Position numbers and translations under genes: made by a program
Notes under the pieces: generated by a model
The model's input: only the letters and a program-made list of their open reading frames with translations
Told to the model about the DNA's origin: nothing
The model's database searches: none
NCBI RefSeq assembly: GCF_006345805.1
Contig: NW_021835991.1
Span: forward strand, 1 to 64,000
Origin: Octopus sinensis
Lineage: Eukaryota
Reading direction: 5' to 3'
DNA length: 64,000 nt
Shown here: positions 1 to 56,618 of the stretch, piece by piece
How the letters are laid out: every line of letters starts with the position of its first letter
Numbering within the stretch: position 1 is the stretch's first letter

Positions 1-1820
1 ACGCCCTCTCCGCAACCGGGGTAAATGGTGCTCTTCTCTCCCGGTGCTAGGGTCAAACCCTTCTCTATAGTCCACATTTTAGCGTTTGCATGTATGATTT
101 CAGTCGTCCCAAGACTGCGATATCCTTTTCGAGTATCCATGACCAGGATATCGTCAGCATAGATAACGAGCTTGCCAGTACGTGTCGACGGCAGAGGAAT
201 GTCCGCCAAGAAGAGGTTGAACAGAAGTGGACTCAAGATAGATCCCTGCGGACTCCCCTTCTAAGTTCCACACACCCGATAGGCGGTTTCCACAGCGGAC
301 AATGATTGTCTTCCTGACAAGAAGCTCTCCAGCCATCGATAGGTCTTTATATCCCGGCTCCGATGTCATGGATTCTGGAGAGTAGGCCCAGGTGCCACAC
401 GCTATCGAAGGCTTTGGCCAGATCCAGACACACCACAGTTAGCCATGCTTCATTTCTGTCAGCACGGGATAATTGGTGCTCTAACTCCCTGAGGCAGTCC
501 CCTGTGGATCTTCCTCCACGAAATCCCCATTGTTCAGGTAAAAGCAAATTTTGTGATTCTATATGACCAGAGAGTCTGTTAAAGACAATCTTTTCCATTG
601 TCTTAGAGAAAGCACAAATGAGGCTAATTGGCCGGTAGTTCTGTGCCAGCAGTGTCGATTTACCAGATTTTGGAATCATTCGAACAATCGTATGCTTCCA
701 CGCCGATGGAAGGTGTCCGAACGTCCAGCTGGCGTGAAACAACATAGTCAATGCTCGTATCAAGATTTCAGGGGCCTTCTTTAACAACTTCGGAGGGATG
801 TAGTCGAAGCCACGCCTTGTTCTTCAACCCAGCAATTGCCCTTTCAACCTCTTCCTGTGTTATCGCCCCACATAATGGTCCCTCCGATAATTGCGAAAGA
901 GCCAGCTTCTTCACAATTCGGTCATAAGTCCCTCGTGGACGGTAGATTCGACCTCTTGAACCTGACTAAGTTTGGTTCCTGAGTACTTCTGGGATACGAT
1001 CAGAGGAGATATATTTCCCGTCTGGTTCTTTTAGTGAAATTTCAAATCCTTTGGCATCATTTCTGGTAAGGCGTTGATATGCTTTCCAGAAATTAGGGTT
1101 TCGCTTATCCAGTTTTCTGCATTCAGACCTCCATTTACTTTCGACCTCAGTCTTGGCCATTTTTGCAATAGTAAATTTTATCTTGTCGATCTCCAATTTC
1201 AGGCGGCATTTGATTGACTCAACCCGACATCTTCTCCTGCGATTTTCCAGGGTACCTTTCGTTCTGATCAGAGTGACAAGTTTCGAATTCATCCGCTTTT
1301 GCGTTCCTTTGGGTTTCCATACATTTTTTAATGCATAAACATCCAGGAATTTTATGATTGACGATCTAAGGTGATCATCGAGATTGTCAATATCATCTCT
1401 GCTTCTCAGAGGCTGAGACACGACATTTCGAAGAGAATCCCGCATATATGATTCGAATAAACTCCAGTTCATGTTCACGAGGTTGTAACCAATGAACAAG
1501 TCCTCCGTAACATTCATAGTCATCTTTATCAACATCGTTTGCGGCACGTGGTCAGAGCCAATGTCCGCTTCCAACCTCGGTATGTAACATAAAGGACTAA
1601 TTGATGCCGAGCATAGAAAGAGACCCAAGCGATCAGCCCTGCCTCTGTCTGCATAATGATTCAGTTTTCCGATGTAAGACCGAAAAACCCAAGCTACTGG
1701 CCAAGTCCTCAAGGACAGTTCCATCCATATTCGTAGTTTCACATCCATAACTCACATTTTTGGCATTAAGATCTCCTGCTAGGATTGACAGGCAATTTTC
1801 CTCAAAGAACGTCCAATAAC
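1..1820 (-). mobile_element. Non-LTR retrotransposon (LINE family A), 5'-truncated and frameshifted; C-terminal part of APE endonuclease plus RT; runs off the window start
   Basis: ORF 966-1748 has APE motif EADIGSDHVP, preceded by ILAGDLNAK. ORF 347-787 has NYRPISLI, QWGFRGGRST, LDLAKAFDSVWH. Bases 1-346 give GVPQGS/YADD-type motifs in shifted frames. Same family as 32195-34561. Confidence 0.93.
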
Positions 1821-8977: not shown

Positions 8978-10536
8978 TGTCGCGACCCACGCTGGCGACC
9001 ATCCCACGCTGGCGACCATCAGTTTGACAGGTTATGACCTTCAGTTTGACAGGTGATTAGTTTGATATTTAAACCGGAAAAAATTCATTTTAAGAAATGG
9101 TTTAGCGTCATTTTAGAAAAAAAATTATAATTTCTCTCAAAAGATGTTAGCATGAAAAAAGCGACTCAATTTATCATTATTAATGATCGGTATATTTGCG
9201 ACTCCTAACTCATAGTCTTTATCTAAAGGACGAGAATAATCAAAAACACAAATTGGTCATTTGTCTGGACAATGAAATGGAGATCAGGACACTAGCATTC
9301 GCCATTCACCAAGAATCCCACTGGGGAATACGAAAGCTTCAGAAAAAGTGCAGTGAATTCTATTTCACTGTAAAACGTCCAATCATCGAACAAATTATAA
9401 AAGACTGCGAAATTTGTAAATTTGCCCTACCATTGAAAGTATTTAAAAAAATATATACCTAGTTGTCGGATTCTAATTACCATGTAACTGCAGAAAAACC
9501 CAATGAAAAATTCCAGGCGGATCTTATGGATGTTAGAAGATATAAAGAGTTTGACGATGGATGTAATTGGATACTGACAATTATTGACATCTACAGCAAA
9601 TTTGTTGTCTGCAAATCTTTAAAAAATAAAACTGCTTCTGGTAAGACTTACAATTTAATTGAAGAAGTGGTGAATAAATTCCAAAAATTGTTTTATCAAA
9701 TTGGATATTGTCAGATCTTGCAAACGGACAACGGGCTGGAATTCAAAAACCAACTTATGGCTCAACTATGCGAGGAATAAATTTGAAATAAATTAGGGTG
9801 TAATTGAGCGCTTTAACTAGATATTGACACGTGGTATGGCAAAACTGATGGATGAAGAAGGAACTAAAAATTGGAAACAATACGGCGGACATATTACGAA
9901 CAAATTTCGACCTCTCTAAAAATCAAATTATACAACATGCTACTGAAACCGGTCTTATTGTACAATTTCTCTACATAAAAAAATACGTAAAAATTGGAAA
10001 CAATTTTTAGACAAAGTAACTTTTTCCTATAATACGACACACCACTCGGCGATCAATGAGACCCCCTTCACAAGTTTAGGGGTATTTCTGGAATTAACAC
10101 TGTGATTCATGAAATACCAGGTTATAATCTTATTTATAATTTAGATGAAAATAACGAGGCATCGTTTGTCGAAGATGAACTTAATGGTAAATTTACGATG
10201 TATTTATTTTTAGAAACGAATAATAAAAAATTGTAGGACGAATCCGTCATTGAAGCTACACAGATTTGAATCCTTATATGAAGAAAATGGAAAAGTAAAA
10301 AATATAATGTCTAAATACAGATTAATGGTTATTTGTCTTTCCTAACAAACATTTAGATCGAATTACGAAATAGTTACTATGAATAGAGATAAAAAATGTT
10401 AAGTTTTTTGATTTTTTAGCAATTATCTTTAGTCAGTAATTAGTGTCAAACTATGTAGGTCGCCCTGTCAATCGTGTCAACAATGAAGGTCGCTCTGGTC
10501 GCCAGCGTGGGATGGTCGCCAGCGTGGGTCGCGACA
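8978..10536 (+). mobile_element. Ginger-like (retroviral-type integrase) DNA transposon, decayed, with TIRs and 5-bp TSD
   Basis: Perfect 41-bp TIRs TGTCGCGACCCACGCTGGCGACCATCCCACGCTGGCGACCA. TAATA on both sides (8973-8977, 10537-10541). HHCC zinc region (HQESHWG..CEIC) and rve core (FQADLMD, IIDIYSKF, LQTDNGLEF) at 9196-9780. Confidence 0.88.
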
Positions 10537-16325: not shown

Positions 16326-18033
16326 GAACTTCACTCTTCGCTTTGATAAAATATTAGACGCCAAACAAAATCAAGTCTCACATTGATTCTCTTATTACGT
16401 AATAAAGCCTTTTTTCTTTAATAAATAAAATCTTTTTTGTGCGGCCCGGAAATATACTCTTTCTTGTCAATTTGACCCTTAAGCAATTTGGCCCTTATAT
16501 ATTAAAACCAAAACAATAAATGGGTTAAAGAGAAATTGATAATTAGAAAACTCGAACTTTTAGAGTGTTTGTTCTCAACATTTGATGCTTTTGTGATCCG
16601 GATGACTAAATTGATTAAAATATTCTTACTCATCTGGTTTGAAGACAGATTTTTTCGATTCTTCACGGACCTAAAATCACAGTAGCTAGATAAGCATGAT
16701 TTTGTGTTCTGGATGTTCATTTTCATGATTTTTGGAGTTCGGTTTTTTTGGTTCAATTTTTTGATTATTTTGTTTGTACAAATAAAGTTTATAGTCGACA
16801 CTTTTATCATTAAAATCAGTTAGGACAATTCGGATATTCTTTCTTGTGACGTTTTCACTAATAAAGTGTTATCAAAACATCAAATATATTTTATACGTTC
16901 AATAATTCATTTTGTCTCAATAAGTATCACAAACTGAAAACGTTATGAGCAATTCTGATTGAAAGGACGTATCTTTTCCATAAAAATTTTGCTAAAATAA
17001 ATTGATAAATTAAATGTAAATTATCATATGTTAAAAAGAGTCATTCAGTGTAATAAATGGTCTTTACATATGGAATGCGACTTAATTGTTATTATTTGTT
17101 TCAATTAAAATCTTCATGGTGTCTCCGATAGAGTAAAAATACACTTAATGCAGAAAAAACTGACTACGTATAAATAATGCAATCTGTTATACAGTGCTGG
17201 TAGAAAAAAACCGGTTTTCTTTAGTTACTAACTTTTTTTGACGGATAGCATTCAATTTTCCGACTGAATTGAACTCTTTGGAGTTGATTAGATTTATAAT
17301 TTTTTTTATTTATAAAAAGTTTCATTAATCGTTTAAAATTTTGAAGATTTAAATTTTTGCGTGTGAATAAAAAACCGGTTTGCTTTATTGAGTGATATTT
17401 TAGTTATTGAATTTTGAGTTTTATAAGCAAATGTTAAATGCAAAAATTAAAGAAAAGATCCAAAAAATATGGGACTGGTGATAGGATTCCTGGTTCGGAC
17501 GTCTTAAAAAGCTTCAGAAAACAGACATTGAAATTCTATTACATCTTATAGAGTGCGATCCAAAAAAATCTTCTAACACGTTGAGGAATGAAATAAAACA
17601 TTTAACTAGTAAGAGTGTCTGTAGAAAGATAATTGGAACTTACATGCCTGACAAAAAAATTGGATTTGTAATAAATCGACTTTTTTTTAAAATAAATTAT
17701 AATTTAATCATTCTTGGTAAAATTAGAATTATTTTTTTAATTTTTAAAATTATTTTTGGCTTTTAGAATTTAATTTTAAAGCAGAATTTAAAATTTGCCG
17801 GACAAAAAAAATTGGATTTTTGTTGTTTTTGATCTGATCTCGTATAAATGAAGCGTAATTCAAAAATCCATTTATCTGATTTTACAAAAGAAGTAATGAT
17901 TGGATATTACTCTTCTTGAAAAACAATTGAAGAGATATCTAAAATACTGAAAATTCTCAGATCAACCGTGGGATTTGTGACAAGAAAATTTTCCAAAGAA
18001 GGGACCACTACGCGAAAAATTGGATCTGGACGT

Positions 18034-18737
18034 GGAGGTACATCAACTTATTAAACTGACGAATGGTTAAACTGACGGTTAACCGACTTGATTTGTTAAT
18101 ACAATTAATTTTATTATAAAATATTATAAGAGAAATATTTATACTGATGACTACAAACGGAATCAGTAATACCATAAATATATGAACTATTCCCATATAA
18201 TATTTCTCAATTTTTTCAAATCCCTCAATTTTCGTAGAAATACACAAATAGCCGCCAATAGGCATTTTAAATGAGTGATAAAAAATCACTTATGGCACAC
18301 ATAGCATAAGCGACACCACAAGAACACACCCAAGTATAATTCTGGAGATTTTCGGGTTGCAATATTTATTTCGTTTTAATGGATGTTTCAAAGATATATA
18401 TAATTCACAAGTAAAGCACAAAATGAGCATTGGAGAGGCAAATTGAGCAAAGTAATCCGCCCACATTTATTTTGCAAGCTACATTACTGGAGTCCAGAAT
18501 ATTGTGTTTCAACACGACTTTAGCTCGGAGGAGACAATTTGAGATTAAAAATAAAAGCTCGACAAATCCGAGGGTGATCATAAAAAGGCCAGAAGATGAC
18601 TTTCTTAAATGTGTATTCCAAAATGTAATTATTAGACATAAATTGCCTGGGAGGCCGATTATTGACCAAAAAATGAGGAAGAACCTTTCAACTTGGATTG
18701 TGTATTCTGGATGTAAGTTGAACGAAGGGAAACTCAT
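18034..18737 (-). pseudogene. Class A (rhodopsin-like) GPCR pseudogene, TM1-TM5, truncated
   Basis: IIGLPGNLCLII (TM1), SSGLFMITLGFVELLFL (TM2), CK (TM3 Cys), CELYISLKHPL (ERY-like), TM5 LLIPFVVI. One frameshift near 18415 and one in-frame TAA near 18290. Confidence 0.8.
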
Positions 18738-18824
18738 TTAGAATGCATTAAATTAATCTGCTTAAATATTATTTTTTATATTAAATATTACAAATATCCG
18801 TCAACGTCATTATTCCTTTAAATA

Positions 18825-19430
18825 TGTCGCGAGCGCTGAGAGCGATCTATCAATGATTGTCAAAGATAAAAATAATCTATTACATCAAAGTTAGCTAAGG
18901 TTAGTTAGTTATGTTACCCCGGCTTCACTAACATGTAGGAAGCCGGCTGCAATCAGGTAGCGAGACGCGAAGATCGGGCGCTCCCAGAGATCCAGAATCC
19001 CAATAGGCGGAGACAAGTGAGGCGGTCCAGGGAAGGGGAAGAGGTCTTCAGGGGTGAAGGAACGGTATGTTTCGAAAGTTAGCTAAGGTCAATTATTGAC
19101 AATTAATACATGATAATTAACCATTATTTAAGTCGTCTTGAATTTTTTTAGTCGCCTTTAATGAACTTTCTTAATAGACCCATCACTATTTGTGACTTTG
19201 ACAAAATTGTTAGACAATTTTGTTAGACTCTCTGATTGTACAAAACACAGCTTTTTGAATGTGTTTTATCCACTCTTTTTTATCATCCGAACCCATCAAT
19301 TTTGATAAACTCCTTGTGATTGTCTGATTAAATCTTTCAACTATCCACTGACTCTGTGGATTGTTGGGTCGTCTATGAATTTGAACAATTTTGTACTCTT
19401 GACAGACTTTTCTTATATGGTCATTCTTTA
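18825..19430 (-). mobile_element. Ginger-like element end and integrase fragment
   Basis: TGTCGCGA terminus at 18825; rve C-terminal half [20 protein letters not shown] at about 19210-19430. Confidence 0.65.
18902..19074 (-). mobile_element. 173-bp retroposed 3' fragment with (TAAC)n tail and stem-loop
   Basis: 15-bp TSD AAAGTTAGCTAAGGT (18887-18901, 19075-19089); hairpin CCGGCTTC-N12-GAAGCCGG next to the tail. Confidence 0.7.
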
Positions 19431-19830
19431 GATGAAATCTGGGCCGCCGACTCGTCTTCGAAGATGAAACCAGAGCTAGACCAACACCGGCTAGCGTGCC
19501 TAATCTCGGCCGCACATCCTCACAGCGGTGCATGGCTCGGCGCCTACCCATCTACATCAACAGGAACCTTTTTGGATGACGACTGCCTGAGGATCGGGAT
19601 CTCCCTTCGGCTTGGCCTCAACATATGCAGCATCCACCGATGCCGATGTGGAGTCAAAGTCGACGCTAAAGGGCTCCACCCTCTTTCGTGTCGCAGGAGT
19701 GCTGGTCGATATCCCCGCCACGCCTCGTTAAATGACGTCGTGTTTAGAGCCCTCAAGGCTGCAGGCTTTCCGTCACAACTTGAGCCTGTCGGATTGGACC
19801 GTAGTGACGGCAAACGCCCAGACGGATTAA
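19430..19830 (+). mobile_element. CRE-like non-LTR fragment (zinc knuckle plus start of RLE nuclease)
   Basis: [33 protein letters not shown] in ORF 19356-19853. Confidence 0.8.
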
Positions 19831-19866
19831 TAAATAGCGCACAACGAATTTAATTTTACTTGTGGT

Positions 19867-21375
19867 ATGTACATTAAGTCAATTGTAATTGACGGCTTCA
19901 AGTCATATCCACGTCGTACCGAGATAAAAGACTTTGACAGCCAATTCAATGCTATAACCGGCCTCAACGGTAGTGGAAAGTCGAACATTCTCGATTCCAT
20001 TTGTTTTCTACTCGGAATCACCATTCTCTCCCAAGTACGAGTCAACAACATGCACGAACTCGTCTACAAGTCCGGCCACGCTGGAATAAACAAGGCCTCT
20101 GTTTGTGTAACATTCGACAACAACAACAAAAAGGACAGTCCAGCAGGCTACGAGAAGTACGACGACATTGTAGACGACGTTAATAAAGTTAATAAAGTTT
20201 TACGTGTTTTTTTCGAATTTTTAGGTCATAGAAGCAGATATTGGACCACTTTTGACTAAATTGGACGCGGAAAGGTCGTTTTATTCGGAATATCAGCAAA
20301 TTTCGAGAGAGATTGACAGCTTTAGAATGATCAGTGTGGCCCTCATGTATTCCTCTGCACAGGTATTTACAGGTCTTTCATATTTAGAACGAAGTGGAAG
20401 AATATAAAGAAAAGATATCAGAAATTGAAACAAAGTTGAGTGAGAATAAACGCCGGTTGGGTGAGATTGAGCAGGAATGTGGTCAAATTGAGAGAGAAAT
20501 TACAAGAAAAAGCGCGGGAAATGATAATGTTGGTTTTTTTGCTGGCAATTTTAGGACGAAATTGACAATCGAGTAGCGAAACTGCAAGCAGAACTGGACG
20601 AGAAAATGTTAGTGCAAACTAAACTATGGCTCAACAAAACGCCAAGAAAGAGCAGGTTATATCCGAGGAAAACAAACTAAAAAAACTGATCAGACAGAAA
20701 GACGATGTTATTACGTAATCAATATGTTTAGGAGACAAAATCGTTAGCAGAACGAAGGTTGATTCAGATAGATCAAGAGAAGAAGACTGCCAGTCTGCAA
20801 GAGGAGACTGATTTGGAGGCTAAGCGACTATTGGAATCAGAGTCCTACTATAATGCACTGTCCACTGGTATTTCCGTTTCCTTGGATGGAAAGAGGAACA
20901 CTCTCCAGCAGCAGTTGATTGGTAGTGGGTGATAGTAATGGGTAGACGCAAAGCATGGGGTGTCAGTGTTGGAGACTCAGATTAGACAGACAGAGCTGGA
21001 GTATTGTGGGAGTGATGATTGGTAGGTCAATCCACATTCGGTCCCGGTTGAAGAAGAGTAGTGAAGACATGAAGAGCACGGAGGATGACTCGACTCCGAC
21101 TGAAAGGGAGATTGACAAGAAGAATGTCCAATTGGAGCAAATGAGGGATGAAATAGTCCAAATTGACCAAAAACTGAACATTTATGACAAAAATGAAATC
21201 AATTTTAAAAAACAAGACTGAAGAGTGAGATAACTTCACTACAACATAACGTGGACAGTTTACAGTTGTGTTGAGTACATATATCGTAGGACAAGACAAT
21301 TTAGCTTCCAAAACACGGAAGTCTGCGGTCTCGGGTGACCTTTATTCCCCTGAATCGAATCGTCCCCAACAAAAT
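19867..21375 (+). pseudogene. SMC2: SMC2 (condensin) 5' fragment with 7 retained introns, two internal deletions and frameshifts
   Basis: [14 protein letters not shown], Walker [13 protein letters not shown], coiled coil, hinge-like GSLRSRVTFIPLNRI. Introns 20197-20224, 20363-20387, 20529-20554, 20707-20731, 20922-20945, 21001-21025, 21265-21289. No C-terminal half. Confidence 0.85.
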
Positions 21376-22094
21376 ATCTGACTAAGTATTAGAAAATGCA
21401 CAGAGACTAGTAAATGGACTGATTAAATAATAAAAAGATATGAATTGTCAAAAATTTTTATTCGGATGAACAATGACGCATGGAAAACTATTATTTTCTC
21501 TGATAAAGCATCTTTTCAGATTTTTCATACTAAAAAAAGGCAATACTATTATCAAAAAAATGTTCATGTTATGAATTAAGCCATATAACGCCGACAGTAA
21601 AATTTTGTGGAGGTAGTGTTGTGGTTTGGGGCTGTATTTCCTATCAAGGAGTGCACAATTTAGTTTTGTTGATGGAACACTCGATTCCGCTAAATATATA
21701 AATGTAATAACGAATAATTTGTTTGTTTCGGCGCAAAAATGGAACTAAATCAGTTCACTTTCCAACAAGATTTGGCTCCCTGTCATTAATCTGCGTTGAC
21801 AACTAACCAAAAAAAGTTAGTAACTGCAAAACCGGTTTTTTTCTACCAGCACTGTAGTTTTACGTATTTGTATAAATAATTGTAAAATTAACAATATCTA
21901 TTTTTAAAAAAAACACGAAAAATATTTCAAAATTGACTATTTGTTTTTTTATTAGTGATAACGATGGTTTTTAAAAAAAATTCAACAAACTTTATGTCTT
22001 CCATTTTCAAACATATATACTTTTGCTAAACGGGTATGGAAACTTTATATTATTTATAAAGTTCCAGATGCTTATTATTTCGGCCATTTTTAAG

Positions 22095-22255
22095 TTGAGC
22101 GCGCGCTCAACAATATAATTCAAGGCAGCATGTCTGGGTATTCGGCCGGCACAGAGGCGACAAGAGAGGGGGTGCAGCCCTCTCCTGTTAATGACTTTTC
22201 CGCATCTGTACTGATGTGGCTGGCAAATCTCGATCCCAAGGCGTAGACACAAACC
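22095..22255 (-). mobile_element. CRE-like non-LTR fragment
   Basis: [26 protein letters not shown]. Confidence 0.7.
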
Positions 22256-22269
22256 ATTCGTTGTCCAAA

Positions 22270-23376
22270 TTCGTTGTTTCGGCTTTGGTTTGGGATTTTT
22301 TTAGTAGTCTAACCCTCGAAATTTATTATTTATGTTGGCCAAGATGTGTTCTATTATATTTAAATTAGAGCTTTGAGAAGGCAATTCAAGTGTTTTGATA
22401 TTTTTTCGCGTATCCATTCGCAAACAATCTTGGCTGTATGCTTTGTGCCAAAATTTGTTTATAATAGGCAGCATTTATTTTTCATCGATAAAAACGATTC
22501 TACCAACGCCTTTGGACGGTAGCATTATGTTCCCACCACCGTGTTTCACAGTAGGAGAATGTTATTTGATTTATAACGTTCTCCGGGATAATAGCGTACA
22601 TATCGGTGTCCGTCACTCTGATATAAATTAAATTTCCACTCAAAAATTATTGTGTTGAGTTTGGCATTTGACATACCCAAACACTTGTTCGAAAATGAAT
22701 TTCTATTTTCAACGTTCACCCGTCTTAAAAGTGGTTTTTTAATTGAGTTTTCAGTAATAAGACCGCCAGATCGTAACGTATTTGATATATTTTGATACTG
22801 TGATCATTATCAATTTTATGCATAATTTTCCTTAGCGTAATGAAGTGACATTGATGTCATGATATTTAAAAATATCGGTCTTTCAGAGCCTACTCTTCTA
22901 GACAGGGATTTATTATTTTGTATTTTTGAATGTATTTTTTGCACCGCCGATTTCAAAATCTTGTATTTTTTTGCATTAAATCTTTGCGACAGTCAATTTC
23001 TTAAATCTTCGGCAATTAAAATTTTCTCCGCGTCAGATAAGTGCTTAGGCATTAGAATTTATTTATTTAAATAATGATGAAAAATTTGATATTTAAGTGA
23101 TAACTTTTTTAATAGAAATAGATATTCAAAAAATTATCGTTAAGACAGATTTTAGAATAAAATTTTGAGCATAATATGTTTATCAATAAAAATAACAGTT
23201 GTTAGCTTTTGAAATTTTTTGAATGATAATTAAAACCTTAATAATTGCATTATTTTTAAATGGTCACTTTTTCCTGCATTTAGTATATATTGGAATCTAA
23301 AATTAGAAGAATTAGAATTCAAACTCAGGTTTTACGCCTTTTACAACAAAATTCTCGAATATTTTGAACTACACTG
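22270..23376 (-). mobile_element. Decayed Tc1 element
   Basis: PTVKHGGGNIM and PSQSSNLNIIEH motifs; terminal CAGTGTAGTTCAAAA at 23376. Confidence 0.7.
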
Positions 23377-23599: not shown

Positions 23600-25320
23600 C
23601 TAATTAATGTCATCCCTATTTTTTCTACAAAATAACAAATAAAATAACTTTTTTTTCTCTTTATTTACAAAAGACGTCTCGAACACATTTCCATCACAAC
23701 CAGACATAGACTGATTAACCGTCTTCTTCCTTTTTACAACCACAGTCTCGACATTGGCTGCATCCTCGGTCACAATGGGGACAAATTCAGCAGATTCCAT
23801 CAGCTTCTTTCTCTTAGTCCCCTTCCCGGCCACCATTGGAGACACCTCCCATGGAGAAGGTATCGCCAAGTTCAATTTAAACCTCAATTGTCGATATTGA
23901 CTAAATTAGCCATCAAATCGTACTGGTCAATCCACTCTTGTGGGGTTGTCTCATTTCTACGTCCATATTGAAGCAACATTCCATTCTCTATCAAATGTTT
24001 CTTCAATTTAGACTAAAACACAATTTCCCGCCATAAATAGACCTACCACATCACCAAGTCCCCAACGACGTGGATATGTATCTCTTTCCATTAAAACCCT
24101 CTTAAGCTTAGCCACTACTCCATGACTACACATCCCAATGTCCGCAGACTCCATTTTGGCTACCCCCAAGGCAACCGCTTCTCCTTTCGTAGTAACTATT
24201 ACAACCACACTATCCAAGGTGATTCCTTCATCATATCTCAGTACTCCAGGGGCGAGGACCATTGCCCCATAGCACACAGCATTGACCTATTTTGTCATTT
24301 TTTGAACATACAGCTGAATCTTTGATAAAAATACGTTTGTAGGATAATAGTAAGCCTTCCATTGGTTTGATCACATGTCTGAGGTATGTTTCGTTATTTT
24401 TATTGTCGTAATACCACTGGGCGTCCAAGACGTCATGAAGAGTCACTAAATTGTCCTTAAAAATAATATTTTGACTAGTAATATACATATTCGGTAATTT
24501 TTCCTGATTGGACTCTTCTTAGTTCAGTCATTTCTGCCCCTACTCCAAGATGTACTCCAATATGCTCACAAAGTGTACGGATATATGTCCCTGCTTCACA
24601 TTTTACAGAAAAAAGTGCTATATAATAAAAATTATATTTACCAATGTTTTTATCCTTGTGGAATTCTAATAATTTTGACTCGAAAATTGTTCGAACTCGC
24701 AACTGTCTTTTAACTGCCGCAATCGCTGGAGGTTTTTGAAAAATTGACCCACGAAAATAAGAAAGTGACTAAAAATATTAATAAAAAAAACATTTTGAAT
24801 TTCCGTGATATTTTTTATCGCTTTATGTAAGCTCATGACACAGACATACTCTTTTCCGGCTGTTTGTTGCGATTTGACTAATCTTGTGGCATTTTCTATA
24901 CACACAATAAGACATCCAGTGACCTAAATGGGCTAAAAATGTCTTTTTTGTAACCTTTGGGTCTAATGTGCCAGAATGGCCTGTTTTATTCACTCTGAGA
25001 ATTCTCTTTACCCACGCCACTACTTCATGAGAGGACGGATTTGCTGGTTTATCCAAATTAATAAATCCAGATCTATGTTTATAGTATAATATATTAAAAT
25101 GCCTTATATATTGATCAATTGGTCTGTTTAAAGGGGAAACTCCGTATGGAAGAGGTACGTAGTGATTGGTTCGTACATTTAGTTTTTCGTAGTTCTTTTT
25201 AAAATTGAATTTAGTGGGGATTACTTTGAGTAATAAAGGCCATTTTTTGGATTTTAAACGTTGGCCTTTAAGGTTTGGTTCTTCTGTCTTAAATAGGTTT
25301 TATTTTAGATTTTATACCAT
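23600..25320 (-). CDS. DKC1: Dyskerin / H/ACA pseudouridine synthase (Cbf5), intact, 10-11 introns of 23-34 nt
   Basis: Spliced protein has [62 protein letters not shown] and a lysine-rich tail. Introns include 25288-25317, 25195-25224, 25073-25102 (GC-AG), 24924-24954, 24769-24791, 24618-24641, 24456-24486, 24287-24311, 24013-24046, 23901-23923. Confidence 0.96.
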
Positions 25321-31959: not shown

Positions 31960-34900
31960 TGTAATACATTCCAAGATTTCTATTCACCAAAGCTGAAAAA
32001 GTGGCCAGCTAACTTCCTCAGCGGTCGAAGAGGCCGGATCCAACAAAACAATACAAGATCGATGTCACGAAATTTTCCAAACGGAGTCCCTCAAGGCTCA
32101 CCCCTTTCACCAGCCCTTTTTAACTTATTCTTATCGGATCTCCCGCTACCAAACGACAAAGACTCAATCATCCATATATTATAAAGACAATCTGATGGTG
32201 AGGGACTTGAAAATCGTCGAACAAAATTTGTGCGAACTGATTACATTGAAACTACTAACATCCCTTGGATGGATATCTGTCGGAGCTATGTACTCCAAAG
32301 CAATGAAGAATTATCAAAATCTTATTGAAGAATTTTTCCAGAACAATGATAGAGGAATTCTAATAGGAGACCTTAACGCAAAACACACATCGTACGGATG
32401 TGCCAACACAAATTCGGACGGTAATATACTCCTCAGATTATCGGAGAACTGCGGTTTTAGTGTTTTGACCTCACGAGAACCAAACCACTTCTCTTGTTAT
32501 GGAGAGGATTGTATTGGAGTTTTCCTCGTATCGGCAGATCTTGTTCATCAATGCAGCATACCAAGGATTGAGATAAACATTGGTAGTGATCACCTACCTC
32601 AATCCTTGTGTATGCGAACATCATCTACGATATGCGAAGATCTGTTTATCGGATACGATACGTCTCGGACAATCTGGTCGGACCTTGAGGTATCAATGAA
32701 AAAGCATTTGACACCGTATCCAATACAAAACATCTCTTCGAATATACAAATTGAAAAACTTGATAAAATTCTCAGAGAAGCTATACTGGACTTTCTCCGA
32801 AAATCTTCAATCAGGAAATACATCATGTCAAATACTAACAGAAAAACCCGGATTGACGAATCTTTGGGAAAACTTATAAAATGGAAGGGAAACCTTGAAA
32901 AGAAGCTAAGACGATGCAGTGACCCCATAGATCGTATTCGTCTTCGGGATAAGATTCGTACCGTGAAAATAGAGATAAATGATGTCGCAAAAAAACATTC
33001 AGACCTTGCTTGGAAGAGTCAATGCTCGAAACTGAATAAGAAAAACCCTCATTTTTGGAAGGTTTTCAACAGACTGAGTAATATGGAGAACAAAGGAGAA
33101 GAGATCCGACTAAAAACAACTGAAGGGATAGATATCCCGCTCGATGAAGTTCCCTCACATCTGCGAAGTCAACTGGCAAAAGTTCAAGAGGTGGATCCGA
33201 TCGACATGGTTCCGAAAGAAGTTATATGTGAGGCTCAGAGAAGTCTAAGAGCTAATTTGAGTCATACGGGACCACTGTGCAGAGACATAACGTTGGAAGA
33301 AACGTATGCCGCAATTATGAGCTGCAAGAATAATGCACCCGGCCATGACTACATTCCAATTTCTGTATTCAAACATGCTCCAAATATTCTCCTACGATAC
33401 TTGACCGCACTATACAATGCAAGCTGGAGACTTGGATACGTACCGGACTCTTGGAAAAAGTCAATCGTACGTATGATTCCAAAGCCTGGAAAAATAAAGG
33501 ACCATGCAGAGAACTATAGGCCGATAAGCCTAATATGCTCCGTCTCTAAAATTATGGAACGGATTGTCTTCACAAGACTTTCGAACTTCGTAGAGGAATC
33601 AGATGCACTTGCAGTAGAGCAGTGGGGATTCCGACGAAAAAGATCCTGTGGTGATTGTTTCGGAGAACTCGAGAAAGTCATCTCGCTTAGTCTTGCTAAT
33701 AATACAGCGACTATTGCTATCTGCCTCGATGTCTCAAAAGCTTTTGACAGCGTATGGCACCTGGGCCTCTTGGAAAGTGTCGCCAAGAGCAAACCCGGGT
33801 CTAAAACGGTCAATTGGCTGAAGAGCTATTTATCAATGAGAAGGTCATACATACGATGCGGAAACCGTTTGTCGGAATCTGTCGATCTCAAAAGAGGGGT
33901 ACCTCAAGGCTCGGTCTTGAGCCCCCTGCTTTTTAATATTTACGTTGCTGATATTCCAAAACCGAAAGATCCTACCAGTCGTCTCATGATCTACGCGGAC
34001 GACATATTAATAACGGATGCTTCGTGGAGAAAAGACATCTCGTGGAGGAAGTTAAAAGGATACGTGACAAGAGTGGAAGAATGGTGCATATCAAAAGGAC
34101 TGACGCTTGCAAAAGAAAAGTGCACCGCCACTTGGATTGCAAAACAGGGAGCAAAACGAAAACCGCCGAGAAACCTCTATGGGTTTACAGTAACGGAGAA
34201 CCTGAAATACCTTGGGGTTGAAGTTGGATCCAAGGGTTCTTACTTCAGATACATCGACTCGAGGAGAAGGAAATGCGCTCAAATTCTCAGGAGCATAATT
34301 CACTTCCACCTTTCCCCGGAAACGTTTTTATATGTTTATAAAACGTGCGTCGAACCATTGCTTACCTACGGGTTCGAGGGATGGTATCCTACTGCTGAAA
34401 GGGATGGCATTATCGCTAAGCTCGAAAAGACGAGGCGATATGCCATCAAATTGGCAAATGGACTCCAGTTGGACCAACCCATCCCTCAAGTGATGGAAGA
34501 CGCGACGGAAACGGTTGGAAGTGTTCTTGAGAGAGCCTTTTCTTCTCGAATTAAATATTAAAAAAAAAAAAAAAAAAAGAGGGAAACAACGAAGAAGAGG
34601 CATACGTTGTCTCATTAACTTTCTCCCTCTTTTTTCGGCTTTTCCGTTAATAAAAATTCATTCATTCATTTCATTCAAAGACTCAATCATACTATCATAT
34701 GCTGACGATATTGTGATTGCTACTCGGAGCTGTGAGGTTAACATAGCAAGTTCAAAACTACAGAACTACCTCCACAATCTCGAAAGTTGACTTTCGATAA
34801 ATCGACTATCAACAAATCCTGAAAAATCAGTCACTACGCTTCTGACTTCAGCGAGGAAGCTTGGGAAAATGGTGGTGAACTTATATCTAAACAACATGGA

Positions 34901-43162: not shown

Positions 43163-44959
43163 TGTGACAGTCCGAATAAAATACACGCCGAATAATCTAC
43201 ACTTGTCACAAATGGCTGAAAAAATTAGAAATCTAAAAATTAGTATGAAAAAAATCAATAATTGATTATTTATTTTAGTAGAATCACATTATTATTTTTT
43301 ATTTAAAAAAGCGTGAAACATGCGTGTAGTGAGATTATTTAAGGAAACACTGGACAAAATCAAAGAAATGAAAGACTCCAACTTTGATACATCGTCAATC
43401 GAGCGGCATGAGCGATACAGGCTCACAAAATTGGGAAAGAATTTCCATTTTGAAAATGGAAAAACATATTTTCGAAAAAATGGGCTTAAATTGCGTTTTT
43501 TCTGTGAAGATGAAATCGAATTAAAGCTTAAGTGCGTTGAGGTCCAACTTAATAAATAAAATTTAGGCGGAACATAACTATAACCACTTTGGGAGAGACC
43601 GGCTTTTTTCGAAATTAAGAAATCTCTATTATGGATTGAATAGAGAAGAAATCTCTAAGGTGATTTCGAATTGTGCTTTCTGTCAGGTAATAACTCCTTT
43701 TAGTAAATATTCTTAGTCGAAAAAATTATTGTCTACGAAGCCTCCGATTACGCCAATCATTGCAAGGAGATGTAGGGACAGATACATTGCGGATTTAATT
43801 GACCTCAGAAGATATTCGGCGTTGAATGATGGCTTTAGCTGGGTATGAATTTAATGTTAATAAATAGATTTTGGTAATTGTGGATTCTTTTTCCAAATAT
43901 GTAATGCTTGAACTGTCGGTGACCAAATCTTCTGAAGAAATCGCAGATTTATTCCAAAGAATTTTTTATTATGTCGGGCCTCCGCTTATTCTACACACTG
44001 ATAATGGAAGGGAATTTTGCAATTCGCAAATGGATGCTCTATGTACGAAATATGGTATAAAACATGTACGTGGGAGGCCTCGTGCTCCTTGGGTACAAGG
44101 GCAAGTCGAAAGGTTAATGATTTAAAATCGATTTGTAGATTTAATCAAAGCATAAAACGCTGGATATCGTCGGCAAGTTCTTCTCAAAATTGTTTTGGAC
44201 GATATCGCGAATGCATAAAGGACATCGTGTATGATTACAATAACAGCATTCATTCTTCGACAAAAAAATCCCTTTTTATATATTCATGGGTGTTGAAAAT
44301 CCTGGAAGGATTGATGAAGGGGGAATGGAGCAACTTTTAGCCTATGATTCAACTGGATTATCAGAGGCACGAGAAAGTGCATTAGAAAACTTAATTATTG
44401 CTGGCGAAAAAATGATTGAAAAAAGAAAATGGAGATACGACGAAGAAAATATCAATGTCGGAACGACTGTGCTTTTAAGGTCTCAAGCGTCAAATTAATT
44501 TTTAGACAGGACAACGATGCCAATGTTCGGCAGTATCCGCTGTACGATGGACTTGATGTTAATAAGTATATTGTTGTCGAGCGAAGAAATGATCTCTATG
44601 TTATCGAAAAGGAGGACGGTGAGCGGTTACACGGAATTCATATTTCTCGATTAGCTAAAATTGATTAATTTTCATAAATCCATAATAAAAATAATTTTTT
44701 ATTTAAATTAACGATAAATTTTATATGAAAATTTTATTAGGATAACCTAAAATGGAATAACAATATTCAAACGTATAAGTTAACTGCGTAAATTGAGTGT
44801 GGTTGGTTTTGTTTATATAAATTAGTAAAAAAGGTTAATGAATTTTACATTAAAAATCATATTTTTAATAATAATTAAACATTTTGTTGTGTAAATTTTT
44901 AATTTCAGTAAAATTAAAGAATGTAATTATTCGGCGTGTATTTTATTCGGACTGTGACA
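43163..44959 (+). mobile_element. Ginger-like DNA transposon, near-intact; integrase gene 43320-44668 with five micro-introns
   Basis: 34-bp TIRs TGT(G/C)ACAGTCCGAATAAAATACACGCCGAATAAT. Spliced ORF has H..H..C..C, YIADLID, IVDSFSKY, HTDNGREF, QGQVERFN. Introns 43542-43566, 43687-43716, 43843-43867, 44113-44138, 44480-44505. One frameshift in an A7 run at 44262-44268. Confidence 0.9.
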
Positions 44960-46529: not shown

Positions 46530-48060
46530 AAAAACCTTGAAAATAACACAATTTTATATTTTTAGATTAATCAGAAAATCTGAAACCTCTAATTCGGTAC
46601 ATCCACGAAAATATGACTTACGTCGTTATATTGTTTTGGTCGGACTGCAGAGTGGCATTCATCGCAGTCTCTTACCACCAGACGAATAATATTTCTTTTA
46701 GCAAAACAAAATGGTTTTCTAAACAATTCTTCTAATGCATTGTGTCCACAATAATTAGCGTCGTAAATCTCTTCTTCAATTGTTTGCATCTTCTGTTTGT
46801 TGGTTGAGGTAATAACAAGCCTGTGAATAGATAAAGAATCTTAGAGATAGAGCTTTTCGTCTATTAAAACAAATTTTTTAGCCTTCTTTGTTAGTTTATA
46901 CACCAAGAAGTTGATATATTCAGTTCTTGTCCTTCGATCATGGATTTTATTATGTTGTACTCTTTAGTATTTTTTATGATAAAACGATTAATGTGATCGT
47001 TTATTGCTTATATTGTCAAAAATTGAAAATTAATCTCTATTAGTAAAAATCAATGCTATAACTTATCGAAAAATTAAATTAATATAAATGCGAAATTCAT
47101 CAATTTAGATTTTTTAATTCAAAAAAGAAAGAAAATTTAATTTTTTAGAATGGTTGACCTGATTTGAGATTCGAAATTTTCCGACCTCGTTAACATTATT
47201 TTGTGTTATAAAGTTTGTATTATTGACCCTATAGAAAAGGAACGAAATCATAACGTATCTTAAAGATGGTTTATTGCCAGATGGAGTGACTCAGAATCAG
47301 AATGAGTCGAATTCTAGGAGGACTACATCATTATTCATATTGTCCGACTCCAAGAAAGACGTAGTGTATTTTAAAACATATGGGATATTATTACGAACCT
47401 TCGTTTTCGAAGAAGTAGATGAAAATAAAATGTTTGTCGATAATCTCGATCCAAAAAATGGATATCATGGACGAGACAAACTGCTTTTTTTTCTTAAAGA
47501 TACTGTTTATGGATCTTACAGAAATGAGGTTATGTCTTTTCAAATCCTGTTGCCAATGTCAAGCGAAAAACATTATAAACACCGGGCCGGCAATTAAGCC
47601 CATAAGAGCCTATAGCGTGAGAGAAGGTATCACTATTTGGTCTTATATTAGATATATTTTTGATATAATGGATTTACGTCATTATGCACATGAGAACGAA
47701 AATTACCCATGGTTTTTGGTTGGATTCGATTCATTCTCGAAGTTTAGTTGGACGTCACCGTTATTGTCCAAATCAGCTATGGAAGTGTCCAAAGCAATAA
47801 AAAAATTTATTCGCAGAATTTGATTTATCCAACCTGGATAAAAAATGACGTAGAGGACTAAATGGCTTGGACATGGTATACTACAAGGACAACGGCTTTA
47901 CAGTACTCAGATGTGACGAAACAGAAAATGCTTAAAAAATATGTGGAAAAATGACATCTGTGTATTCAAAATTGGGGACAAGGTTTTGTCAAGAGTTAGA
48001 ACCGACACGAATAAAAGAACGCAGAAGCGTGAACACTTCTAAATGAATATATGGATATGA
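46530..48060. mobile_element. Two divergent decayed Ginger-like integrase fragments (46530-47195 minus, 47230-48060 plus)
   Basis: HNALEELF..CDEC (minus) with TGTTAAC terminus at 47195; HGRDKL..CCQCQ and LVGFDSFSKFSW (plus). Confidence 0.65.
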
Positions 48061-52610: not shown

Positions 52611-52619
52611 TAGAGTCTA

Positions 52620-52800
52620 TACCACCACAGCTGGAATCTAGGACTTTTTTCTTAGAGACATTCGAGCGAGGAAGGGGAACAAGTGGTCGTGAGTCAATGG
52701 GAGCAGAACGGACATCGCTTTTTCAACGCATATTAATACCTATTTTGGGTGGCAATTGCCATTCCTTCTTATCCTCTTCTGCTTTTAAACACTTTTTATT
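52620..52800 (+). mobile_element. CRE-like non-LTR 3' fragment
   Basis: FLETFERG..SLFQRILIPILGGN. Confidence 0.55.
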
Positions 52801-53391
52801 GACCAAAGGACCAGGGTAAGCCAGTTAATTATAATACCCCGTGATCCCCCGATTCAAGCGAGGGAGATCCTTCTGAAAGGTTTGATCCTGCCCACAATGA
52901 TCGGACTGAGACGACGATGTCCCTGGGTCAGATTTCTAGAAGTCCTTTTTCGGTAGGCATTAAGTGCCTCCTGAGCGTTGCCATATCCGAATGGAATTTT
53001 CCAACTGACATGGTGGACCCCATAATGCCACGCTAGGACCGGAAGGTAAGAGATCCCCATTTCCAACTGTGTCGTGCCAGAAGTACTCGTTGCCTCACGG
53101 GCAGGGGAACGATAACGAGAATTTACCCCAGGATGAAAATAGCCTCCTTCGGAATCGAGCTCACGACCGTTCAAATCCATTATCCTCTTCTGCTGATTAG
53201 TTACTTGCTTTTTTTATTCATTACTTTACAATAAAAAACTTTACAATACATTTAGTACATTTTCTAATTAAAGTATGCATGTAAATAAATTTCACAATAC
53301 AAACTAAGAACGGCATAGATGCGTTTACTATGCATCTCTTCATCAGGGTTTTCGATTTTAGTAAGAAACAGTCTCCTTTCACACATTAGAG

Positions 53392-54752: not shown

Positions 54753-54760
54753 CATTAGAG

Positions 54761-55010
54761 AGACAAGCTTTGAACATATTAGGGAATTCCGCAGGGCACG
54801 GCTTATCACATCATTAAGTTCAGAGTGGCGGGGGAAATGGCCAGCGCTACGACGGCAAGATAGCGGGTGTAGTCATAATGTGCAAATCCTCTGACTGCAG
54901 GGCATCAATCCAAGGCGCAGAGAAACTGCGATGCGGAGGTATTCGTTATCCAGTAACGTCCAGATTGACGCCATTGGGATGGCTATCAGCCGGGGTCCTG
55001 AATAGTTTTG
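54761..55010 (-). mobile_element. CRE-like non-LTR fragment
   Basis: [38 protein letters not shown]. Confidence 0.75.
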
Positions 55011-55149
55011 GGATTAGAAATATTCCTTATGTTGAACATTATATTACGTACAGCCCTTTTAGCTCTAGGTCCATTATAATTGATCATCTGGTGGTGTGTA
55101 TCAAAGGTTTTTATAACAGCTTCAGTGTCTATATCATATAGACTGAGTG

Positions 55150-56400: not shown

Positions 56401-56618
56401 ATTATCGTTTATAATTCTTCATATTTTGAAAGATCAAAACGTTTTAAGATCTTCATATTCAAGAAGTCTATCGAGAAATTACTCAATGTTAACTTCTCTG
56501 GAGACAAACTTACTCGTGCAATGTTGCTTCTACGATTCGTTGTTATTGGTATCCGCTCGAAGTTAACAAAGCCATCCAGTTAACAAAGCCATCCATTCGA
56601 AGTGGTTATCAACTAACT

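Follow-up and report, generated by a model that had tools for sequence, protein, structure and literature searches.

A Tc1-like element enclosing GPCR and SMC2 gene fragments in an octopus assembly contig: a Pack-TcMariner-like structure probably made in place

A 64,000-nucleotide stretch of contig NW_021835991.1 (NCBI RefSeq assembly GCF_006345805.1, Octopus sinensis; hereafter "the window") contains fragments of two host genes between the terminal inverted repeats (TIRs) of a Tc1-like transposon. Is this a transposon that picked up host exons and moved with them, or did the host DNA enter the element where it now lies? A preliminary description had favored the former, calling the structure a Pack-Tc1 that "could move host exons." Here, we compare the structure with related copies and ask how the carrier, the host-gene fragments, and the junctions between them came together. 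The features discussed below are listed in Table 1.

Table 1. Positions of the carrier, nested, foreign, and outer sequences in the window.
Feature	Position	Strand	Remarks
Element B, left arm	17098-17189	.	Older outer Tc1-like relic with Tc1-A inside; inverted similarity to 23238-23324
TA flank, left	17190-17191	.	Target-site duplication, read directly; reference copy in L002 likewise TA-flanked
Tc1-A, left part	17192-17642	+	Reference nt 1-544 minus 87-bp internal deletion (reference 268-354)
Tc1-A, left terminal repeat	17192-17240		Followed by 5' inverted-repeat region and transposase remnant
Tc1-A, inner direct repeat of left inverted repeat	17369-17401	+	79% identity to 17205-17237; IR/DR-type layout
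Tc1-C remnant	17643-18055	+	Second Tc1-like family; nested at TA 17641/2 within the Tc1-A transposase gene
Tc1-C, left inverted repeat	17643-17849		Part of the nested remnant
Tc1-C, ORF	17850-18051		PAI-type helix-turn-helix, "..IGSGR", fused to its own transposase's last codons ("RGGTSTY*")
Left junction J1 (18055/18056)	18051-18087	.	11-bp motif TTAAACTGACG at 18051-18061, repeated at 18067-18077, then related TTAACCGAC
GPCR pseudogene fragment	18120-18737	-	Rhodopsin type; start codon (18737) through TM5; Pfam 7tm_1
Noncoding stretch	18738-19212	-	GPCR start codon to integrase stop codon; contains 173-bp insert
Small retroposon-like insert	18887-19089	-	173 bp (18902-19074), GC 55%
Integrase catalytic core, C-terminal part	19213-19440	-	Cut off on N-terminal side; rve_3 E 0.007 (weak)
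Non-LTR retrotransposon fragment	19436-19830	+	C-terminal CCHC and nuclease-like domain (translation); both ends truncated; GC 57%
SMC2 pseudogene fragment	19867-21426	+	SMC_N E 1.7e-27
SMC2 introns (n = 5)	20363-87, 20529-54, 20707-31, 20922-45, 21001-25	+	GT-AG, 24-26 nt, phase-consistent
Tc1-A, right part	21427-21806	+	Reference nt 608-987
Tc1-A, right TIR	21807-21854	-	Last 50 bp of ~190-bp repeat kept (block including TA 21855-6)
TA flank, right	21855-21856	.	Read directly
Element B, body and right arm	21857-23324	-	Translation; SB100X E 1.4e-7

Results

Anatomy of the carrier

The inverted termini of the carrier, Tc1-A, match at 29 of 29 positions (17190-17218 vs 21828-21856, counting the TA on each side), and their similarity extends to about 51 bp at 92%. 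The ~48-bp TIRs with TA on both sides, enclosing 4,663 bp (17192-21854), are therefore as first described. The 27-nt terminus occurs twice in the 64 kb, compared with 0 occurrences expected by chance.

A cargo-free reference copy of 1,456 bp with identical termini is present in a contig of the "Octopus sinensis" assembly (L002:7765-9220). In blastn alignments to L002:7763-9222, the left part of Tc1-A is 89.3% identical over 17190-17459 and 90.0% over 17455-17643, and the right part is 90.9% identical. Positions 17381-17190 match the right repeat of the reference (nt 1271-1460) in inverse orientation (84%). The left part encodes a transposase remnant ("MLN..", then "..GSGRLKKLQKTDIEILLHLIECDPKK..GTYM") that matches protein P0122. 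The right part encodes the catalytic domain, in which the first and second acidic residues are present ("FSDK" and "FQQD"); it has three frameshifts and an E value of 4.2e-16 against SB100X.

Two internal deletions, of 87 and 423 bp, come in addition to the central break. With the longer one (reference nt 988-1410), the element lost its third catalytic residue, the C-terminus, and the inner stretch of the right repeat; this loss could postdate the capture of foreign DNA. The right 50 bp that were kept match the inverse of the reference left end at 50/50 positions and the reference right end at 49/50. Reading frames are broken in both Tc1-A copies seen, which differ from each other by about 10%. 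The best explanation is that Tc1-A is an old, single, non-autonomous copy of an IR/DR-type Tc1-like transposon.

The transposase had been thought to break after GSGR (18033) and to resume near 21380, some 60 codons further on. Alignment to the reference shows instead that the Tc1-A sequence stops at 17643 and is taken up again at 21427, with only 64 bp (21 codons) of reference sequence missing.

A second transposon nested in Tc1-A

The ORF bearing GSGR, previously taken for the carrier's own transposase, belongs to another family, Tc1-C, to which its DNA is about 89% identical (L003; protein P0124). By blastn, L003 7746-8186 corresponds to positions 17604-18033 (89.4%) and L003 9005-9030 to 18030-18055 (92%); Tc1-C itself follows L003:7787-8186 at 89% identity and then 9005-9030. 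The fusion in the ORF corresponds to about 820 bp deleted from within Tc1-C; here the two alignments overlap by 4 nt of microhomology (ACGT). The ORF also resembles the PAI subdomain of Sleeping Beauty (E 0.02). The Tc1-C termini read in L003 are CAGTGCCTGACAAAAAAAATTGG, and in the window the terminus CA(G)TGCCTGACAAAAAAATTGG begins directly after TA 17641/2, at the end of the Tc1-A homology. This boundary shows a TA within Tc1-A as the insertion site of Tc1-C. At its right end, Tc1-C lacks 266 bp, and a similarity search for its right repeat past 18055 gave nothing.

One element at one insertion site

Tc1-A, flanked by TA, evidently sits in a terminal repeat of a further relic, element B. The inverted similarity between the element B arms scores 71, a value reached by 0/279 genomic and 0/300 shuffled controls. 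The body of element B contains a decayed Tc1-type transposase, running from 23058 down to 22304, and a non-LTR nuclease-domain fragment (22090-22300). When the flanks of Tc1-A are joined, the arm alignment continues across the TA and scores 127 vs 71, which 16 of 1000 GC-matched controls reach. Continuity across the insertion alone is weakly significant (p about 0.02), and the right flank alone is not significant. Because the two flanks are two parts of one inverted-repeat arm, they point to a single insertion site.

These data bear on the idea, raised in the preliminary description as a way to refute its own reading, that the TIRs come from two independent neighboring Tc1-A copies that contribute one end each, with host DNA between them and possibly forming a composite "macrotransposon." TA flanks, being present at every Tc1 end, do not discriminate here. 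However, on the 1,456-bp reference the end of one part and the start of the other lie 64 bp apart, and the parts have the same orientation and are equally diverged; by our rough estimate, about 4% of independent breakpoint pairs would lie that close together. Moreover, the flanks derive from one element B arm, and no other Tc1-A terminus occurs in the 64-kb window. We consider two copies extremely improbable. Since one half represents reference nt 1-544 and the other 608-1460, with a shared orientation and 89-91% identity on both sides, the alignments support one Tc1-family element, not two.

The foreign DNA

The foreign DNA comprises 3,371 bp (18056-21426), its right junction, J5, lying exactly at 21426/21427. 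It is no mere addition, replacing 330 bp (266 bp of Tc1-C and 64 bp of Tc1-A). At J1, the first TTAAACTGACG copy spans the last Tc1-C base, 18055, and the duplicated motif would represent templated end-joining filler. Host-gene sequence forms both boundaries: the GPCR fragment is cut after TM5 at J1 and the SMC2 fragment in the hinge at J5.

The GPCR, integrase, LINE, and SMC2 pieces are real, as shown by matches to 7tm_1 and SMC_N, a weak match to rve_3, and translation. The GPCR fragment scores 37.3 bits against 7tm_1 (E 2.7e-9; Pfam cut-off, 30.5) and had no homologue in the protein database. It lacks TM6-7 and has one frameshift near 18468 and an in-frame TAA at 18290-18292. Its lower boundary is uncertain (18088-18125).

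The SMC2 fragment is collinear with human SMC2 (9f5w_A) over about residues 1-105, 197-499, and 566-598, every splice joint being covered. A 55-nt intron-like joint (20170-20224), carrying a duplicated GTTAATAAA, marks the missing residues 103-196. The reading frame shifts near 20622 and 21205 and is interrupted by a TAA near 21380. All of the coding pieces are now disabled pseudogenes. The fragment retains host-type introns of 24-26 nt, like those of the neighboring dyskerin gene (23, 24, 25, 31, 31, and about 34-37 nt); the template was therefore genomic DNA of a dicyemid-type host, in line with the DNA-level capture proposed earlier. The parental SMC2 and GPCR loci were sought and not found.

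GPCR (-) and SMC2 (+) are arranged head to head; the 1.1 kb that separates their start codons contains transposon relics. Hence, a single captured locus is as likely a source as a five-piece mosaic, and the earlier remark that two unrelated host genes inside one Tc1 would be unusual was too strong. The integrase fragment has 84 relatives at E<=1e-3; six of ten that were scanned are 401-600-aa proteins with rve and without reverse transcriptase, and four of these six have an H2C2 zinc finger. This agrees with, but does not prove, an origin from a Ginger-type DNA transposon. The non-LTR fragment, a putative CRE-clade piece according to the preliminary description, had no Pfam match; it has relatives at 22090-22300 (-) in the window and, at 66-71%, in L002 and L003. 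The noncoding stretch upstream of the GPCR fragment, which has no ORF and no similarity to sequences in the window or loci, could be the tail of the integrase element, GPCR upstream DNA, or both. The small retroposon noted earlier within it is a 173-bp insert flanked by a 15-bp direct repeat, AAAGTTAGCTAAGGT (18887-18901 and 19075-19089), that is, a target duplication. A TAAC-type tail suggests its strand; it showed no Rfam or tRNA match and no relatives in the window or loci.

Such relics could suggest that the block arose by nesting and decay, with Ginger-like, LINE, and other elements stacked in Tc1-A and Tc1-C, host fragments brought in by transduction, and deletions following later. Transposons are densely nested in the window, Tc1-C is itself a true nested insertion, and one cargo insert has its clean 15-bp target duplication. 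Yet the block ends in host genes (GPCR after TM5, the SMC2 hinge) rather than transposon termini and substitutes for 330 bp instead of adding to them, and the LINE fragment is 3'-truncated, unlike a target-primed insertion. Nesting and decay therefore seem distinctly unlikely as the source of the block.

An assembly chimera, in which reads from Tc1-A and Tc1-C were misjoined to reads from a GPCR/SMC2 region, might be expected in a repeat-rich region, and the related sequence lies in an octopus assembly that appears to include a second organism's DNA. Against this, each captured gene is a pseudogene bearing frameshifts, stops, and internal deletions of its own, and thus not simply a misjoined functional locus; J1 has a junction-specific duplication; and the joins fall in unique sequence, outside shared repeats. 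We regard a chimera as very unlikely.

Discussion

Origin of the composite

Taken together, the data favor a Pack-TcMariner-like, single-copy structure made in place by filling a break beside the nested element, a reading to which we assign a probability of roughly 0.6. Tc1-A sits in element B, and Tc1-C then inserted at a TA in the Tc1-A transposase gene. A double-strand break may have followed at or near the right end of Tc1-C, most likely through attempted Tc1-C excision, although any break would suffice. Both elements lost sequence, 266 bp in the case of Tc1-C and 64 bp in that of Tc1-A. The gap would have been filled, through repair synthesis or end joining, with a 3,371-bp copy of DNA from another place in the genome. 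This copy carries the 5' portion of a GPCR gene and, pointing away from it, the 5' half of SMC2, with relics of a Ginger-like integrase and a LINE nuclease domain between them; it may stem from one contiguous head-to-head locus or from several templates. Polymerase jumps during this synthesis could account for both gaps within SMC2, for the 55-nt joint and its duplicated GTTAATAAA, and for the 11-mer repeated at the left junction. The template-switch or repair origin suggested in the preliminary description fits the junctions, given the 4-nt microhomology at the Tc1-C deletion and the 11-bp motif duplicated across J1. In-place formation does require extra events, namely three deletions in Tc1-A and two in SMC2.

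Alternatively, a Tc1-A copy could have captured the cargo elsewhere and then carried it into element B by transposition, perhaps as a multicopy exon shuffler. The outer 29 bp are perfect at both ends and TA-flanked, the entire 4.66 kb lies at one site in element B, and multicopy Pack-TIRs are known in animals (PMC8277862). However, searches of the 64-kb window and of 39 kb of related contigs turned up no second copy, the right repeat has lost its inner portion, and frames are broken in both Tc1-A copies seen, about 10% apart. The literature prior is also low: animal Pack-TIRs are nearly all single-copy, and gap filling without transposition accounts for most of the single-copy ones, whose breakpoints fall preferentially in the element interior (PMC8277862). 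We consider such a mobile origin unlikely. Because of this prior and the truncated right repeat, the composite most probably formed where it now lies and did not bring its cargo along. Lacking the right inner repeat, it is unlikely to be mobile today. Of the original Pack-Tc1 reading, then, the enclosure of host-gene fragments by a Tc1 element stands; the capacity to move host exons was overstated, the window and three related loci having yielded no second copy and the right repeat being reduced to its last 50 bp, without the inner repeat.

Comparison with known systems

Internally deleted derivatives of P, Ac/Ds, and Tc1 carry filler DNA from interrupted gap repair; for P elements, work proving this is cited in PMC8277862. 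The present structure resembles them in keeping both ends around a replaced interior, in the microhomologies and duplicated motifs at its joins, and in mixing element-derived with foreign pieces. It differs in that its filler is unusually long and gene-bearing, and its link to excision is one that we infer. With Sleeping Beauty, Tc1-A shares the IR/DR arrangement, a TA target, CAGTG termini, a ~190-bp repeat with outer and inner direct repeats on the left, a PAI/RED-type N-terminus, and a DDE catalytic core alignable to SB100X. Protein similarity is modest (62.7 bits over about 110 residues), and the present copy, unlike Sleeping Beauty, is missing both the third catalytic residue and the inner repeat on the right.

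Plant Pack-MULE and Pack-CACTA (Pack-TYPE) elements are likewise non-autonomous TIR elements with host exon-intron fragments copied at the DNA level. They belong to another superfamily, however, and form multicopy families, some demonstrably mobile (PMC8903248, PMC6379663), whereas the present copy is single and decayed, with part of one repeat gone.

Closest are the animal Pack-TIRs, of which 370 have been catalogued, 115 of them TcMariner (Tan et al. 2021, Nat Commun; PMC8277862). A Pack-TIR formally has an identified parent, which was looked for here and not found. The host here is a dicyemid-type genome. The cargo of 3.4 kb exceeds the reported median of 224 bp (PMC8277862) and consists of parts of two genes plus transposon relics, and the break lies at a nested second transposon rather than in the carrier itself. 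As in animal Pack-TcMariner elements, duplicated host sequence that is not of transposon origin is bounded by TIRs and a target-site duplication, the breakpoints lie inside the element (PMC8277862), the structure is single-copy as far as visible, and an origin by gap filling or template switching fits the junctions. Host-gene filler of this sort is a known by-product of DNA-break repair, and the present structure would be a further case of the catalogued Pack-TcMariner type.

Tc1-A is one interrupted Tc1-like element

The sequence TACAGTGCTGGTAGAAAAAAACCGGTTTT at 17190–17218 has a perfect inverse match at 21828–21856 (29/29, including the TA), and the inverted termini of Tc1-A, the TIR-bearing Tc1-type element studied here, show about 92% similarity over about 51 bp. 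No further copy of this terminus is present in the 64 kb, with a chance expectation of 0. The TIRs begin with CAGTG, TA flanks the element at 17190–17191 and 21855–21856, and the enclosed span amounts to 4,663 bp, all of which bears out the preliminary description of a TIR pair with TA on both sides of 4663 bp. Because all Tc1 ends carry TA, a TA flank alone proves nothing, and further evidence was needed to pair the ends.

When the transposase remnants were used as protein queries, two gene models came up in assembly GCA_006345805.1, which is filed under Octopus sinensis. Around one of them (P0122, at locus L002) lies a 1,456-bp cargo-free element that is likewise TA-flanked and whose termini are exactly those of Tc1-A in the window. 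When mapped on this reference copy (see table), the two halves of Tc1-A are complementary to within 64 bp, point the same way, and have diverged to the same degree, which argues for one interrupted element and against the possibility, raised in the preliminary description, that the TIRs belong to independent neighboring copies. The reading frame of Tc1-A itself is interrupted for 21 codons only.

Features of the window and loci with reference copies
Feature	Position in window	Strand	Match or remark
Reference Tc1-A nt 1–267	17190–17459		89%
Reference Tc1-A nt 268–354			Deleted in window
Reference Tc1-A nt 355–544	17455–17643		90%
Reference Tc1-A nt 545–607			Missing in window
Reference Tc1-A nt 608–987	21427–21806		91%
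Reference Tc1-A nt 988–1410			Deleted in window
Reference Tc1-A nt 1411–1460	21807–21856		98%
Foreign block	18056–21426		3,371 bp
Element B	17098–17189 + 21857–23324		Older Tc1-like relic hosting Tc1-A in its arm
Second LINE nuclease-like domain fragment	22090–22300	Minus	Inside element B
Dyskerin (DKC1/Cbf5)	About 23,650–25,200	Minus	Only apparently intact cellular gene nearby
LINE	32195–34561	Plus	788-aa ORF; Exo_endo_phos_2 endonuclease and RVT_1 domains
Long ORFs	50567–52386, 53994–54659, 59677–61293	Minus	Read like hAT/ZBED-type transposases (“..RWLS.G..”)
Further integrase-like segments	About 9463–9777, 43868–44122, 47419–47823
L002 (reference Tc1-A copy)			GCA_006345805.1 VCDQ01000570.1; 854 kb
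L003 (reference Tc1-C copy)			VCDQ01008398.1; 74 kb

The Tc1-A transposase remnant matches the catalytic domain of SB100X (E = 4.2e-16) and still has acidic residues at the first two catalytic positions. The window copy has lost the third catalytic residue by deletion; the reference, as read, has it (“DMNPMEH”). At the N terminus, the remnant matches P0122, a protein with HTH_Tnp_Tc3_2. With its TA flanks, CAGTG TIRs, and a DDE/D transposase with a paired-type N terminus, Tc1-A belongs to the Tc1/mariner superfamily (Tc1-like, IR/DR type).

A second Tc1-like family is nested in Tc1-A

The other gene model, P0124 at locus L003, represents a different Tc1-like family, Tc1-C, with termini CAGTGCCTGACAAAAAAAATTGG as read in L003. 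A slightly mutated Tc1-C terminus starts at 17643, directly after a TA and at the exact end of the Tc1-A homology. Window 17643–18033 aligns at 89% identity with Tc1-C over its left repeat and 62 initial codons, and window 18030–18055 corresponds, after a 4-nt overlap (ACGT), to the last codons of the Tc1-C transposase. The nested Tc1-C is internally deleted; its right 266 bp were looked for beside both cargo junctions and not found. The transposase break placed after GSGR (18033) in the preliminary description does not belong to the carrier, as the alignment with L003 identifies the GSGR piece as the start of the nested Tc1-C. The segments 17434–17650 and 17850–18036 were also considered as a swapped or duplicated N terminus of one transposase, a reading that was dropped because the reference copies place them in two families.

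The insertion site lies in an older relic

Outside Tc1-A, 17098–17190 is an inverted copy of 23238–23324 (score 71, reached by 0/579 controls), and between these arms, to the right of Tc1-A, a decayed Tc1-type transposase runs from 23058 down to 22304 on the minus strand (SB100X, E = 1.4e-7). With Tc1-A removed and its flanks closed up at the TA, the match to the other arm of element B runs on across the joint and scores 127 instead of 71; 16/1000 GC-matched controls scored at least as high. The right flank alone gave no significant alignment with the arm, and the collinear extension is suggestive only; continuity of the arm across Tc1-A is suggested, although not strongly in such AT-rich DNA. 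Taken together with the reference mapping, it is explained most simply by Tc1-A having inserted once into an older element.

The three hAT/ZBED-like ORFs farther right in the window (50567–61293) gave no Pfam match at E ≤ 1e-4.

The foreign block contains fragments of host genes

Both ends of the foreign block, at the left (18055/18056) and right (21426/21427) cargo junctions, consist of host-gene sequence and not of transposon termini. At the left junction, the 11-mer TTAAACTGACG occurs twice (18051–18061 and 18067–18077), the first copy straddling the last Tc1-C base. The leftmost gene piece, on the minus strand, is a rhodopsin-type GPCR fragment that runs from a start codon at 18737 to just past TM5 and matches 7tm_1 above Pfam’s cut-off (E = 2.7e-9; model positions 62–177). 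It comprises TM1–TM5 only, with one frameshift and one stop codon, and is a pseudogene fragment without an intact seven-helix frame.

Between the GPCR start and an integrase fragment lie 475 bp without coding capacity. Inside this stretch (18887–19089 including flanks) sits a 173-bp GC-rich insert that has a hairpin (CCGGCTTC...GAAGCCGG) at its terminus and is cleanly bounded by a 15-bp target duplication. No relatives of the insert were found in the window or related loci, and Rfam and tRNA scans of 16.5–23.5 kb gave no match; candidate identities are a short non-autonomous retroposon and a LINE with severe 5' truncation. Of the integrase core, the last 74 residues survive, on the minus strand. 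Six of the ten relatives scanned are rve proteins of 401–600 aa without an RT domain, four of the six with an H2C2 zinc finger, a domain make-up that agrees with an assignment to Ginger and does not prove it; neither Ginger termini nor a target duplication were found at the fragment. Next comes a 390-bp, GC-rich fragment of a non-LTR retrotransposon, labelled CRE in the preliminary description and perhaps of that clade, with a CCHC/nuclease-like C-terminal domain and both ends cut. Its CCHC and nuclease-like motifs were recognized by reading; a Pfam search gave no match, and no RT was found. Within the window and related loci, this LINE fragment is the only part of the cargo for which relatives were detected.

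The start codon of the SMC2 fragment lies 36 bp past the non-LTR fragment, and the SMC2 sequence, identified as such by domain order and best matches, extends right up to the junction with Tc1-A. It aligns with human residues 1–105, 197–499, and 566–598. Residues 103–196, about 500–565, and all beyond about 598 are lacking. Two frameshifts and one stop codon break its frame, and the piece is a pseudogene fragment, not a gene. It contains five GT–AG introns of 25, 26, 25, 24, and 25 nt, and the spliced translation is collinear with human SMC2 over every joint. The intron calls are a homology-guided reading; an ORF-maximizing intron finder gave spurious introns. Since SMC2 keeps these introns of about 25 nt, the copying took place at the DNA level and not from mRNA, and in this respect the gene-fragment capture proposed in the preliminary description is upheld.

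The 55-nt joint at the missing SMC2 residues 103–196 contains a tandem GTTAATAAA GTTAATAAA (window 20176–20200). This doubling resembles that of the 11-mer at the left cargo junction, and one and the same error-prone repair synthesis may have left both as footprints.

The GPCR and SMC2 fragments face in opposite directions, away from each other, with start codons 1.1 kb apart. Given this head-to-head arrangement, one contiguous source locus, already full of transposon relics, would be at least as economical an explanation of the block as a mosaic of five pieces. Protein searches for the parental genes gave no near-identical match for SMC2 (best 75% identity) and no relative for the GPCR, and exact-protein look-ups for two window ORFs returned nothing. 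In P0001 (UniRef “SMC2, Ascaris lumbricoides,” 423 aa), the N-terminal SMC2 head segment is present in triplicate, apparently an artefact of annotation or assembly. This protein has the top SMC2 score because its N-terminal domain occurs three times, and a nematode host was dropped for that reason.

The window is most likely dicyemid-type DNA

The dyskerin gene has at least six GT–AG introns, of 23, 24, 25, 31, 31, and about 34–37 nt, and its spliced product matches DKCLD, TruB_N, TruB_C_2, and PUA. The only animals for which introns so short have been reported are dicyemids and myxobolid myxozoans (PMC13644364). The sequenced Dicyema japonicum came from Octopus sinensis; repeats make up 49% of its genome, the GC content is 36.7%, and introns average 38 bp (PMC6736024). 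The window shares its LINE with the “octopus” contigs at 98% and Tc1-A and Tc1-C at about 90%. The LINE match pairs L002:1–594 with window 34072–34675, and the 98% identity of this 3' end makes the LINE family look young, possibly active. A 26-nt intron (L003:1293–1318) interrupts a TMEM19-like gene on L003.

The mini-introns, the shared LINE and Tc1 families, and the TMEM19-like intron together indicate that the window is most likely dicyemid-type DNA, and that the octopus assembly probably contains dicyemid DNA in the form of L002, L003, and the gene models LOC118761107 and LOC115230198. The shared Tc1 families might instead reflect transposon exchange between parasite and host rather than contamination, a less likely alternative. 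For the cargo, the mini-introns rule out an octopus origin, and it was copied from the same kind of genome as the window. A practical by-product is that these contigs and RefSeq-style gene models, although filed under Octopus sinensis, apparently represent dicyemid-type DNA.

A probable break-repair origin of the composite

The nesting runs from element B as the oldest layer through Tc1-A and Tc1-C to the filler as the youngest. The 3.4 kb of filler take the place of about 330 bp that spanned the right end of Tc1-C, and the joins carry short overlaps and duplications. We infer a double-strand break at this end of Tc1-C or next to it, for which a failed or one-sided excision would be the obvious candidate cause. 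The break would have been resected and then repaired by synthesis that strayed onto ectopic templates before rejoining, and the two SMC2 gaps, together with the joint carrying the doubled GTTAATAAA, would represent further jumps on the same template. This putative gap-filling route is the one described by Tan et al. for Pack-TIRs (PMC8277862). Frame-breaking lesions are about three times as dense in the Tc1 remnants as in the cargo, which fits capture by an already dead element.

The composite could, alternatively, belong to a Pack-Tc1 family that is still mobile in the genome of a dicyemid parasite, its 4.66 kb being moved in trans by the Tc1-A transposase. If so, two divergent host genes would have their promoter-proximal halves carried about a genome that has only some 5,000 genes, and these halves could seed new exons or antisense regulators. 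Further copies would lend the composite more weight, as a case of exons shuffled by a Tc1 element in a parasite whose genome is highly reduced. No second copy of Tc1-A with cargo was found in the window or in loci L001–L003 (about 100 kb of sequence in all). Repeats in the Tc1-A family are about 190 bp long, the left one including an inner direct repeat, and of the right repeat the window copy keeps the terminal 50 bp only; in Sleeping Beauty-type elements, inner sites matter for transposition. The two Tc1-A copies examined are about 10% apart, with frames broken in each. We regard such a mobile family as unlikely.

Comparison with known Pack-type elements

The SMC2 and GPCR fragments lie between nt 544 and 608 of the Tc1-A reference, and the termini of one TIR family thus enclose non-transposon host-gene sequence, as the core definition of Pack-type TIR elements requires. 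The designation Pack-Tc1 in the preliminary description therefore holds for the structure, whereas movement with the cargo has left no sign in the window or L001–L003; overall, its observations are confirmed in part and its interpretation is supported in part.

The likeliest meaning of the composite is that a transposon relic served as a patch site for break repair, a process already documented at scale in animals. Its local value is that of a clean case in which the 25-nt introns of the host prove DNA-level copying, in which the order Tc1-A, Tc1-C, filler provides a relative timeline, and in which the filler is about 15 times the typical length. Pack-TcMariner elements make up 115 of the 370 animal Pack-TIRs catalogued (PMC8277862), so that the present element adds to a known kind. 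Compared with these known Pack-TcMariner elements, it stands out by the length of its filler, by its two gene fragments, and by a break at a nested transposon.
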